Below, piece after piece: positions 59,074 through 64,000 of a DNA stretch of 64,000 bases. Position 1 is the first letter of the stretch, and every line of letters starts with the position of its first letter. Under the pieces are notes generated by a model. It ran no database searches. It saw nothing but the letters and a program-made list of their open reading frames with translations, and was not told where the DNA came from. This DNA is from Saccostrea cucullata (Eukaryota), in assembly GCF_032062105.1 (NCBI RefSeq), contig NW_026938498.1, positions 620,001 through 684,000 on the forward strand. Reading direction: 5' to 3'. The position numbers were made by a program, and so were the translations under genes.

Positions 59074-60191
59074 CAGGGACGTAGCAACAGGGGGGGGCAG
59101 GGGGGGCCTGGCCTCCCCACTTTTATTGCCAACAATACTTTTACTATTGAAAATGTTCATTGAAACCACTTTATTCTAAAGTGAAGTATTATGAAGGAAA
59201 TATAGTATTGTAAGCTTAAACCAGAAGTCTCTGTCGAGACTGAAGCTCTACTGGTTTGAACTTATAGCAAAGGAAGAGAAAAGTACTTAAGCAGCTGGGA
59301 TATGAAACTTTACAACAGCAATAAATAGATGATAAAGTCTCTTTATGTATCTTAGTGTAGTCTACTTGTGTGCCAAGTTATATTGAAATCAGACCAAAAC
59401 TGTAGCCAGTAGCATTTTGAAACAATTTTACAGATATTTCTAAGGCAACAGGTTCATTGAAATCAAAAACCCATATACAGAATTATGTATCTTAGTGTAT
59501 TCTACTTGTGTGCCAAGTTATATTGAAATCAGACCAAAACTGTAGGAGGAGTAGCATTTTGAAACAATTTTACAGAAATTTTTATTTTTAGTAACCACGG
59601 CAACACCGTTCATCGAAATCAAAAACCGATATACAGAATTATGTATCTAAGTGTATTCTACTTGTGTGCCAAGTAATACTGAAATCAGGTTAAAACTGTA
59701 GGAGGAGTAGCATTTTGTGTTCATCGAAATCAAAAACTGATAAACAGAATTATGTACCTTAGTGTAGTCTACTTGTGTGCCAAGTAATACTGAAATCAGA
59801 CCAAAACTGTAGGAGGAGTAGCATTTTGAAAGAATTTCACAAAAATTTCTATTTTTAGTAACCAGCAACATTTTTCAAAAACCGATTTTTAAAATTTGTG
59901 TGTATATTGAAATTCAAAATGGTAGCATTTTGAAAAATTGTTTACAGACAGACGGACAGACAGGCGGACAGACGGAGAGGATCGCTAAGCTCTTCTGGTC
60001 TCTGAGGTAGAGCTAAAAATGTGATATTGAAAGGAATTGGTAGTCGCTACCCCCCCCCCTCCCCCCCACGAAATAGGATTTTCGACTTTGGGCAATTTTC
60101 CTTTTTTTTTTGCTTGTCAACTTTTTCAGGTAAGGAAAAAAAAAATTCTGTGGCTGGCCCCCCCACTTTCAAAATCGATGCTACGTGCCTG
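59074..60191. mobile_element. CAGG-terminal MITE with 5-bp TSD (hAT5-like?)
   Basis: 13-bp TIRs cagggacgtagca / tgctacgtgcctg; GTGGT duplicated at 59069-59073 and 60192-60196. Confidence 0.85.
59244..60018 (-). mobile_element. HINE family 4, second copy, nested in the MITE
   Basis: Same ends (aagctctactggtttg ... gtagagctaa) and repeats as 45488-46080; four units. Confidence 0.88.
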
Positions 60192-60879
60192 GTGGTCCCT
60201 GCATTGTCCTTGAGAAAATTGATGATACCACGTATCGAGTTAAACGGAGTGCTAGAAAAGAAGCAAAATTATATCTCATAGATCGCTTATCGGTTTATGT
60301 TTGGATATGGATTTTTTTGTGTGATATTTAATATTTCTGGAGGGAATGTTTAGTATCCATTGTACCTGTGGGAAAAACTGTGTTCCTCCGCTACCGGGGC
60401 ATTGTGTAATTTCTGTTGGGATATTACAGGGTAGATTTGGGAGCAGATTTTTATTTTTAAAATTTGTGTTTTGATAATGGTGAAGTATATAGGTACTGTG
60501 TAGGGTCGCGCCTTTTTTTGATCACTCAGGGTGTGCTCCTGCGGTTTTTGGTGACCATGAAGAATCCTTGAAGAGGATCTTGGGTCTTTATTTTGTTTTA
60601 TTTTTTCTGTTGATATTTGATCTACGGGATCACTTGGTGTTGCATCTCCTCTGTGGTGGTATTTGCTATCTGCCTAAGGTGTGTTGTGTTGAAAAATGTT
60701 TTACTTTTCCTTGTCCTGCTGGCCATCCCGACAAATAATTTTAATGATAGTAGGGTACATGTAGGGGGTGGATTTTAGAATGTTTTACTAAAATTAAAAA
60801 TGTATCTGCAGACGGCATTGCTGTCGGCTCAGAATATTATACTGAGCCTGACAGATATTATTATTTACCCGTTTTCAGC

Positions 60880-61898: not shown

Positions 61899-62042
61899 AC
61901 AATTATAGCCTTTTGATATCGGTCAATACATGTTTTTATATACCTGATGAGAGTACATCGACATCCGACTTCGACCTCGATCGGTCGATATACCTCATCA
62001 GCTCCATAAAAACATGTATTGGCCTCATAGGGCTATAATTGT
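61899..62042. repeat. Long imperfect palindrome
   Basis: acaattatagcc..ggtcaatacatgtttttat..ctgatgag..atcgac / gtcgat..ctcatcag..ataaaaacatgtattggcc..ggctataattgt. Confidence 0.75.
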
Positions 62043-62179
62043 ATATGATTATAAACACACCCACACACAAAAACATTTTATATATATTTTTATGAAATAT
62101 CGATTTTATTCTTTACTATGACGTCACATTCCCCATTGTGACGCCACTCTATTATTATAGTAGATAAAATTTTTGCAAG

Positions 62180-62459
62180 ATGATTGCAACAACAGACATT
62201 TTATTTCATTTCTCCAGATGTAGAGATTTCTCTAAATGGCGGTACAACCAATACGTCGGTAAGGAATGTTTGTGGCTTTAAAAAGTAAGCTAATTTTTTT
62301 TTATTCAGTGAAAATTTGTCAAAATATTCATGCCTTTTCTGTATTTGTTTAATAGGCAATCGCCCGCGACCCCATGGGAGAGTTATAATCGATCCATTAA
62401 ACATCGGAAGCTCTGTAGACCCTCCAAACTGGGTCCACAGAGGCGGAGGAGACCATTAA
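62180..62459 (+). CDS. Putative small spliced peptide gene or terminal exons, copy 1 (exons 62180 or 62218-62258, and 62356-62460)
   Basis: GT-AG phase-1 intron of 97 nt; exon 2 encodes (G)NRPRPHGRVIIDPLNIGSSVDPPNWVHRGGGDH*; frame and splice sites conserved with copy 2. Confidence 0.6.
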
Positions 62460-63040
62460 GGTATGAAACAATAATCAAAATGATCGGTAATATTTGTATT
62501 AGAGAGAGTGAGGGGGGAGGGGAGAGTTGCAATTATTTCATATTAATTAATTATCAAATAAATTTTTAAAACTTTATGTCATTCGAACCTAAGAAGTAAA
62601 TGAACAATCACAAGATATAAAAATTTCCGCTTTTATCGAAAAAGCAGTATTCTTTGTTCTTGAGAGAGGCAGGAAACCCTGTTGATCGGACATACCCGCC
62701 GTGAGCCTTTTGATTATTTTAAGGTTCTTTGGTGTTTCTATTGATTTACGTTTGATTTACACCAATTTTTCTTTAATTCTTTAATATATTGAAAAATGAC
62801 GTGTTTTCTTTATCAATTATAAATACATAATTATGTCTCAAAAGCGTACATAATGTGACGTACATGATCTCAAAAACATTTCTTTCAGTTATTTCACCTA
62901 AGTACGAATTTGACCTAAAGGACCATAAAACTAACGAAAAAAATGTATTCAGTGAGAAATTGTCAAAATTTTCATGCCTTTTCTGCATTTAATAGATACA
63001 CGTCCGCGACTCCATGGAAAACAACTAGACAAAACTGAAG

Positions 63041-63301
63041 ATGATTGCAGCAATAGTTATTTTGTTTCACGTCTCGAGATGGCTTTACTACAACTACATT
63101 GGTAAGAAATGTTTGTAGCTATAAAAGGTAAGGAAAATCATTTTATTCAGTGAGAAATTGTCAAAATATTCATGCCTTTTCTGTATTTGTTTAATAGACA
63201 CAAGATCACGACTCCGGGGACAAGTAATAAACCCAAGTGATCCTGGGAGCTCTGTGGATCCCCCAAACTGGGTCCACAGAGACCCAAGAGGAGACCATTA
63301 A
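63041..63301 (+). CDS. Putative small spliced peptide gene or terminal exons, copy 2 (exons 63041-63101 and 63198-63302)
   Basis: MIAAIVILFHVSRWLYYNYI + (D)TRSRLRGQVINPSDPGSSVDPPNWVHRDPRGDH* (54 aa); 96-nt phase-1 intron; the other two frames of exon 2 are closed. Confidence 0.6.
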
Positions 63302-63779
63302 GGTAAGAAAATAAAAATGATCGGTAATAGAGAGAGAGTGAGGGTGTGTGTATTAATATTAATTACTATAAAATAAAGATTACATTTTATTTATGTTATT
63401 CGATCCTACGACGTAAATGAGCAATCACAAGATATATGAATTTCAAAGTTCCGCTTTTTAATCGAAGAAGCAGAAGTCTTTGTTGTAAAGAAACTGTAAT
63501 TAGCGTGCCATGACAAAGTCATACTTTTTTATGCAATTGATTTTGGATAATTTGGTGATTTTAATGAAAACAGGTCAAGAAAACGATTAGTGACAGTTCT
63601 CATAAAAACGTAAAACAATACAATTAATAGCTATCGCACAAGAATATAAAGCATCATGCATATTACATGCGATACGGTGTTGGTACTATTTCTCTTCTCT
63701 ACTGAATAAATGTTCCAATTCCATATATAAGACGTTTGGTCACCGTCATGGGCTGGTGCACACTGACCTAAAAGGCTAG

Positions 63780-64000
63780 TGTTTACATAGTGTCTATGGG
63801 ATTCTCCAAACAAAAATTTAATACTTATCCTAAATCAGGGAACGGATGTGTTTCTCGTTACATTTTGCTGCCGTGGCTACACCGTCCATTAAATTTAGCA
63901 AAGAAATGGAACTACGTAAACTGAAAGCCACCAGGGCAGGGAACAGAAGTGCTGTTACAAGGAAATTGAGAAATATGATCGGTAGAATTTTTCAGAGAAC
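63780..64000 (+). mobile_element. BEL/Pao-like LTR retrotransposon 5' end (LTR end, PBS, gag start); left boundary unknown
   Basis: ...cgttaCA (63862), then ttt-tgctgccgtggct resembling the tRNA-His PBS TGGTGCCGTGACT; ATG 63906 opens MELRKLKATRAGNRSAVTRKL, resembling BEL/Pao gag N-termini (from recall). Confidence 0.6.

Follow-up and report, generated by a model that had tools for sequence, protein, structure and literature searches.

Lineage-restricted families of small open reading frames (ORFs) that encode micropeptides have reportedly been found by ribosome profiling in Drosophila. In families of venom and host-defence peptides, such as snake venom PLA2 and the conopeptides, "accelerated" exons stand beside conserved introns. 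Here we describe a pair of tandem units, unit 1 and unit 2, in a 64,000-nucleotide stretch of the genome of the oyster Saccostrea cucullata (the window, C20635:620001-684000), and set them against these two kinds of system. We give a probability of roughly 0.8 to the reading that the two units are neighbouring copies, in tandem, within a low-copy family of very compact coding genes that is apparently limited to oysters. Judged by the way its copies have diverged, the family is protein-coding and is made up of unannotated two-exon micro-genes whose transcription and splicing are predicted. Searches of the whole assembly, covering 1.17 Gb, found about 15 loci in two subfamilies, A and B, and six of these have an intact reading frame. 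Copies outside the window are labelled in the following by contig or by a numbered extract of the assembly (L043 is C10827:1719-4826 and L044 is C6025:1-2608).

The original prediction, made from the letters of the window, described a diverged tandem duplication of about 860 bp, and this was borne out: self-comparison and alignment place the matching blocks 817-861 nt apart and the units themselves at a spacing of about 840-860 nt. The donors, the introns of 97 and 96 nt, the TAG acceptors and the second exon of 105 nt were each verified in the letters, as was, for both units, the TAA one nucleotide ahead of a second donor-like site, and translation reproduced the exon 2 peptides that had been read for the two units. 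The coding indels between unit 1 and unit 2 measure 18, 3 and 3 nt, every one in frame, and all four differences in a conserved block of 12 codons (gga/ggg, gta/gtg, gac/gat and cct/ccc) are synonymous. The truncated third copy that had been proposed between the units is also present, and it abuts the upstream edge of unit 2, in the place where a promoter would be expected. A similar truncated exon-edge piece, with the 3' half of the intron and the first bases of exon 2, lies at C20635:695763-695861. The duplication exceeds chance, because the same unit recurs at about 13 other loci in the genome with codon-periodic divergence.

The pattern of substitutions among these paralogues carries the coding interpretation. 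In an alignment of seven A copies, the ratio of non-synonymous to synonymous differences (pN/pS) is 0.42 in the predicted frame, 0.53-0.55 in the antisense frame whose wobble positions coincide with those of the predicted frame, and 0.87-1.36 in the other four frames. The differences at codon positions 1, 2 and 3 are 0.27, 0.18 and 0.39 among the four intact A copies, and 0.126, 0.122 and 0.437 among the B copies, where pN/pS is 0.16-0.29; the minimum changes counted per alignment column come to 46, 31 and 88 at the three positions (chi-square p = 1.3e-7). Between A and B, exon 2 gives a pS of 0.54-1.0, with the synonymous sites saturated, and a pN of 0.20-0.37. In copy pairs other than recent duplicates, the pN/pS of exon 2 lies at 0.16-0.70, and values above 1 are confined to two recent pairs that include broken copies, namely unit 2 with the copy at contig position 695861 and C3340 with C2747. 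This comparison across paralogues had been suggested in the original prediction, and its outcome is a ratio of 0.16-0.55, found in the predicted frame only, and not one of about 1.

Insertions and deletions respect the same frame. Those among the six intact frames are all multiples of 3, and the first coding exon of the intact copies, with lengths of 79, 61, 73 and 67 nt in A and 61 nt in B, is always 1 mod 3; frame-shifting indels are limited to copies that also carry stops. Random frameshifts, which had been named as a sign against the model, are absent from the promoter-keeping copies, apart from an extra T in a T-run of the C10827 copy. The central claim of the original prediction, a family of spliced micro-genes for peptides of about 54-60 residues, is thus supported by these evolutionary tests.

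Subfamily A comprises 8-9 loci by DNA searches of the whole assembly. Single copies lie on contigs C9605, C9159, C3340, C2747 and C4912, and the whole two-unit array has been duplicated segmentally 13 kb downstream (contig positions 695116-696323), where the unit-1-like copy has an internal deletion and the unit-2-like copy an in-frame TAG. Subfamily B is invisible to DNA searches and was recovered only through a protein profile of the four intact exon 2 peptides, used in a six-frame search of the genome that was repeated with a second exon 2 alignment. Its loci are C20635:819289, C15860:34596, C10827:3219 (identical to C6025:1001), two on C10814 and a fragment on C17181. L043 and L044 carry identical B sequence, down to the extra T in exon 1, over the roughly 590 nt that were read; they are probably one locus assembled twice (a haplotig), in which case the number of loci is one too high.

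The architecture of B matches that of A. It has two TGACGTCA sites, of the cAMP response element (CRE) type, at a distance of 40-60 nt, an ATG that has A at -3 and continues with ATTG, a first coding exon of 61 nt in phase 1 that encodes a MIATTII-type start, the donor GGTAAGAAGTGTTTGAGG, an intron of 100-114 nt that ends in CTTTTCTGCATTT...CAG, a second coding part of 116 nt including the stop, and a conserved AAGGT a few nucleotides further on. Common to both subfamilies are the paired CRE sites, the ATGATTG start, the donor GGTAAGAAnTGTTTGnGG, the intron end CTTTTCTGCATTT...AG and the stop followed by AAGGT; across the family, the first coding exon measures 61-79 nt, the intron about 100 nt and the second exon 105-116 nt.

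Considering that the copies lie on at least nine contigs, are flanked by microsatellites and in some cases stand beside a 166-bp satellite, and that many of them are broken, the units could be taken for a non-coding interspersed repeat or a transposon fragment with accidental open frames. This reading is scarcely credible and, on the sequence comparisons, largely refuted. The family is low-copy and no interspersed repeat, because it has roughly 15 loci, whereas a real repeat nearby gave 2,210 first-look candidates; this repeat is the element of about 145 bp at window positions 60040-60200, 2 kb upstream of unit 1, and the 40 copies scored are 85-96% identical. The dispersed copies of the micro-gene are homologous over about 400-500 bp only, from about 120 nt before the ATG to 100-200 nt past the stop. 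These blocks coincide with the stretch from promoter to 3' untranslated region, in place of the high copy number and defined termini of an interspersed repeat, and no terminal repeats were seen. The coding signature is strong, and the promoter motifs co-vary with the integrity of the frame, as set out below. A match to a known non-coding repeat had been another danger foreseen for the model, and with about 15 loci the unit is no known or high-copy repeat. A sequence that occurs both 2 kb upstream of unit 1 and 0.5 kb upstream of the C9605 copy was considered as a shared exon and rejected; it is the same high-copy repeat of about 145 bp.

The coding family is further marked by a promoter-like block ahead of the ATG. 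Its CpG-context sites show no difference at 21 positions among the three promoter-bearing A genes, compared with 40% at exonic CpG-context sites, and the TATA-like TATTATTATA is kept in unit 1, C9159 and C3340, with one change in C9605. Both TGACGTCA-type sites are kept in five of the six intact-frame loci (unit 1, C9605, C9159, the locus at 819 kb of C20635, and C15860), and the paired sites are kept as well in C10827, whose sole defect is the one extra T in its T-run. Loss or degradation of the sites was seen in unit 2 and its sister copy at contig position 695861 as well as in C3340, C2747 and C10814 (L046); apart from unit 2, each of these has stops or frameshifts or no longer has its ATG. 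Counted from the other side, seven of the eight broken loci that were read upstream have lost or degraded TGACGTCA sites. Promoter integrity and frame integrity co-vary.

The two units of the window differ in this respect. Unit 1 is, by its predicted parts, a complete gene. Unit 2 combines an intact frame with the absence of the promoter block, whose place is taken by the truncated copy, and its comparison with the sister copy, 5-8% diverged, gives nine non-synonymous changes and one synonymous change. This is consistent with relaxed constraint after promoter loss; unit 2, a promoter-less duplicate, is probably drifting and may be decaying.

That unit 2 has no promoter of its own also fits a different gene model, in which the two exons form the 5' portion of longer transcripts: the donor past the stop would splice onward, and the small frame would be an upstream ORF or leader, or the units would be cassette exons of a larger gene. 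A donor-like AAG/GTA[AT]G one nucleotide past the stop (GGTA[AT]G at its core) is indeed kept in seven of the eight A copies read there and in part in B, which has GGTT[TA]G, and the truncated copy would supply an acceptor between the units. We nevertheless consider this model improbable on four grounds. First, there is no common downstream exon, as the dispersed copies share only their 400-500 bp; this shared unit opens with the conserved promoter-like block right before the conserved ATG, which also makes it unlikely that the units are terminal exons of longer genes, an option that the original prediction had offered. Second, an AATAAA, likely a polyadenylation signal, is conserved about 100 nt past the stop. 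Third, the purifying selection on the peptide across A and B is stronger than leader ORFs usually show. Fourth, joining exon 1 of unit 1 to the acceptor at 62996 would leave exon 2 of unit 2 out of frame (a 106-nt exon).

The intron of the proposed micro-gene is the most conserved segment of subfamily A, with a mean pairwise divergence of 0.125 compared with 0.25-0.26 for exons and 0.40-0.46 for flanking sequence. With CpG-context sites removed, the values are 0.11 for the intron and 0.34 for third codon positions, a threefold difference, and CpG decay explains the fast exons only in part. Most of this conservation falls in the last 55 nt at the 3' end, which is also the part found in the truncated copies, and between A and B the introns share only about 18 nt after the donor and about 20 nt before the acceptor. 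Several explanations were tried and rejected. As a structured RNA, the A intron has a weak consensus fold (-3.6 kcal/mol) with no covariation, and Rfam gave no match within the units. As coding sequence entered through an internal CAG acceptor, it shows only non-synonymous substitutions when these are read off the alignment; the exon 2 frame extended upstream through the intron has no ATG; and the periodicity of the intron (0.11/0.10/0.165) is weak and unconvincing as coding. Its conservation is most likely due to signals for splicing so small a gene, or to a regulatory element within the intron.

In the conserved coding block, an RNA hairpin is predicted in unit 1, unit 2 and C9605, with energies of -18.9 to -24.5 kcal/mol and z-scores of -2.9 to -4.8. 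The stem in C9605 has one compensatory change from T-A to C-G, the 3' side of which costs an Arg-to-Gly replacement. The hairpin is weak in C9159 and absent from subfamily B, and it was rejected on these grounds as the main constraint on the GSSVDPPNWVHR block. It was not found elsewhere in the genome and belongs to no larger hairpin family there. Nor does it have the character of a microRNA or hairpin-RNA precursor, being confined to a part of A and without an Rfam match in the units.

These two features could mean that the functional element is RNA or DNA, with the intron acting as an enhancer or small-RNA source, or with the hairpin itself at work, and that the open frame is a by-product. 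The divergence of the intron (0.11-0.13, against 0.34 at non-CpG third codon positions), the stability of the hairpin and its compensatory change, made at the cost of an amino acid, would fit this. We regard it as highly improbable, as codon periodicity and a pN/pS far under 1 are seen in both subfamilies; moreover, the hairpin is not a property of the whole family, the interior of the intron is unconserved between A and B, and the intron has neither a consensus fold nor an Rfam match. Such an element could instead be an added layer of the coding gene. It is possible, although we give it only a small chance, that the family is a class of CRE-driven, inducible, oyster-restricted micropeptides whose gene has a second functional layer, in which the conserved intron and the A hairpin control the splicing, stability or translation of the messenger RNA (mRNA) or yield a small RNA.

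Under the coding model that we prefer, the product has 54-60 residues and is free of cysteine except for one non-conserved Cys in the tail of C9159. Its N-terminal part of 20-26 residues has an invariant M1, I2, F9 and a Trp in the alignment. The first nine residues are hydrophobic, of the MIATTIILF type (Kyte-Doolittle 1.6-3.3), and a W/Y-rich stretch follows. The original prediction had credited the second copy alone with a hydrophobic N-terminus; this is the family rule, and unit 1 is the copy that deviates, with Asp at residue 6. There is no classical membrane helix in this part, because the 19-residue Kyte-Doolittle window reaches at most 1.24, and the predicted start is no textbook signal peptide. 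The tail, of 33-37 residues, is rich in Pro, Arg, Gly, Asp and His, with 9 of 39 alignment columns invariant. Its core runs in the order of a Val/Ile stretch, Pro, Gly-Ser-(Ser/Pro), Asp, a Pro-rich stretch, an aromatic residue, His and a Gly-Asp end; the GSSVDPPNWVHR block is the A version of it, and in B four residues are inserted behind the aromatic position. Run on the alignment of the tail, AlphaFold2 gave no secondary structure at a pLDDT of 61; although this is weak evidence, the tail is probably extended or disordered.

Two analogies that had been drawn for the peptide found no support. The likeness to hypervariable secreted effectors or antimicrobial peptides is unsupported: no diversifying selection on exon 2 was seen among copy pairs other than recent duplicates, and pN/pS stays under 1 outside the two recent pairs with broken copies. 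The likeness to precursor peptides finds no dibasic or amidation signals in the exon 2 alignment; inspected for the marks of a neuropeptide or prohormone, this alignment has no KR or RR pairs and no Gly-basic amidation signal, and its motif is single-copy.

We propose the following gene model. The gene would measure about 0.4-0.5 kb and would begin with the promoter-like block, with two TGACGTCA sites of the CRE/ATF type and, in A, the TATA-like box. A very short leader, an ATG in good context, one phase 1 intron of about 100 nt, the stop and an AATAAA about 100 nt later would follow. Transcription would start near the ATG, since the TATA-like box begins 30 nt before it, and a single splice would give an mRNA of roughly 300 nt. 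Transcription might answer CREB/ATF-type signalling; the hydrophobic start might bring the peptide into or through the membrane of the endoplasmic reticulum, as a short signal peptide or anchor; and the conserved tail might serve as a linear binding motif. We favour a signal-responsive peptide for the secretory pathway or the membrane, with a binding motif in its tail. The family has evolved by tandem and segmental duplication with frequent gene death.

No relatives of the peptide were recovered outside the assembly. Word-indexed searches of protein libraries with the exon peptides gave no match, profile searches of Pfam and the PDB gave none, the ESM Atlas held no usable match, and a motif search of the literature did not find three short family motifs in the papers covered. 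An exhaustive HMMER profile search of 1.84 billion representative proteins returned only four weak hits, all of which were rejected: P0001 represents a 23-nt tandem repeat translated in three frames and is unlike the units in its DNA, P0002 is long and repetitive, and P0003 and P0004 resemble translated CRISPR-type repeats. The restriction of the family to oysters is our assumption.

Several points weigh against the interpretation as a whole. The search for homologues at the DNA level was confined to the window's own assembly, one genome, which bears on the lineage limits of the family. More than half of the family loci are broken. The promoter and the intron are more conserved than synonymous sites, which a purely peptide-centred model leaves unexplained, and the conserved donor-like site directly past the stop lacks an explanation in the favoured model. 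Finally, the N-terminus is without a charged n-region and has a His three residues ahead of the candidate cleavage points. The coordinates of the parts of both units are collected in Table 1.

Table 1. Parts of the two micro-gene units and of the truncated copy between them, in window positions (u1, unit 1; u2, unit 2; A and B, subfamilies).
Feature	Position	Strand	Remarks
First CRE-type palindrome, TGACGTCA	62119-62126	+	Conserved in A (u1, C9605, C9159) and B (L040, L042, L043)
Second CRE-type site	62139-62146	+	TGACGCCA in u1, TGACGTCA in the other promoter-bearing intact genes (alignments)
TATA-like TATTATTATA	62150-62159	+	21-30 nt before the ATG; putative role
Unit 1 coding exon 1	62180-62258	+	ATG at 62180, A at -3; 26 codons + 1 nt, phase 1
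Unit 1 intron	62259-62355	+	97 nt; donor G/GTAAGG, acceptor TAG
Unit 1 coding exon 2	62356-62459	+	34 codons including the split codon; TAA 62457-62459; exon of the original prediction 62356-62460, 105 nt
RNA hairpin of 11-12 bp in the conserved coding block, unit 1	62411-62442	+	Predicted; -18.9 kcal/mol, z -2.9
Donor-like GTATGA	62461-62466	+	1 nt past the unit 1 stop
AATAAA, unit 1	62557-62562	+	About 100 nt past the stop; likely polyadenylation signal; kept in u1, u2, C9605 and the copy at contig position 695861
Truncated copy	62943-63030	+	3' half of the intron, acceptor 62994-62995, first 25-35 nt or so of exon 2
Unit 2 coding exon 1	63041-63101	+	ATG at 63041; 20 codons + 1 nt
Unit 2 intron	63102-63197	+	96 nt
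Unit 2 coding exon 2	63198-63301	+	TAA 63299-63301; the 105-nt exon runs to 63302
Equivalent hairpin, unit 2	63250-63281	+	Predicted; -24.5 kcal/mol, z -3.8
Donor-like GTAAGA	63303	+	After the unit 2 stop
AATAAA, unit 2	63372-63377	+	Downstream of unit 2

The surroundings of the pair contain other repeats. At window positions 61921-62024, about 95 nt before the first CRE site of unit 1, an inverted repeat has 31-nt arms that are 87% complementary and a 42-nt loop; Rfam returned only chance-level hits to plant microRNAs for it (E 0.6-3.6), and it may be a foldback or an insertion of the miniature inverted-repeat transposable element type. Window positions 59212-59974, about 2.2 kb upstream of the pair, hold a tandem repeat spaced at about 111-156 bp, and the same repeat lies just outside the window at C20635:684134-685157 (L060:134-1157), about 0.6 kb past unit 2; because the repeat stands on both sides, the pair is flanked by two blocks of one satellite. 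The 166-bp satellite mentioned above is distinct from this repeat of about 150 bp. It adjoins three members of the family, from both subfamilies (L043:1886-3105, L040:4-224 and L017:2718-2982), and has 7.4 copies with 92% matches in L043. At the end of the window, positions 63909-64000 hold an ATG-initiated open frame, rich in Lys and Arg, that runs past the window end and looks like the start of a gag-type ORF of a retroelement.

Annotation routinely overlooks genes as small as these, and the family is a clean case of a coding micro-gene detected from the evolution of its paralogues alone. With it, the oyster repertoire gains an uncharacterised family of peptides that may be signal-responsive. 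A conserved intron beside saturated synonymous sites also makes it a compact system for studying intron constraint in tiny genes. If the peptides prove to be stress or defence factors, the family would be relevant to oyster biology and aquaculture.

In comparison with described systems, the family is new and of a known kind, that of small-peptide genes restricted to a lineage and evolving through duplication and loss. With the venom and host-defence families, the oyster genes share an intron and 5' flank that are more conserved than the exons, and tandem duplication that leaves many dead copies. Unlike those families, they have a pN/pS below 1 and no sign of diversifying selection, and their peptides are without a cysteine framework, a clear signal peptide and pro-region cleavage sites. 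The small-ORF micropeptide families differ in another way, as the oyster genes are multi-copy, with a compact promoter and an intron of their own, are not an ORF inside a long non-coding RNA, and are known from sequence alone. The likeness to these micropeptides lies in the product and in the means of recognition: the peptides have fewer than 100 residues, are missed by annotation, begin with a hydrophobic segment, contain a short motif that is conserved, and are detectable through codon-level conservation among their paralogues.

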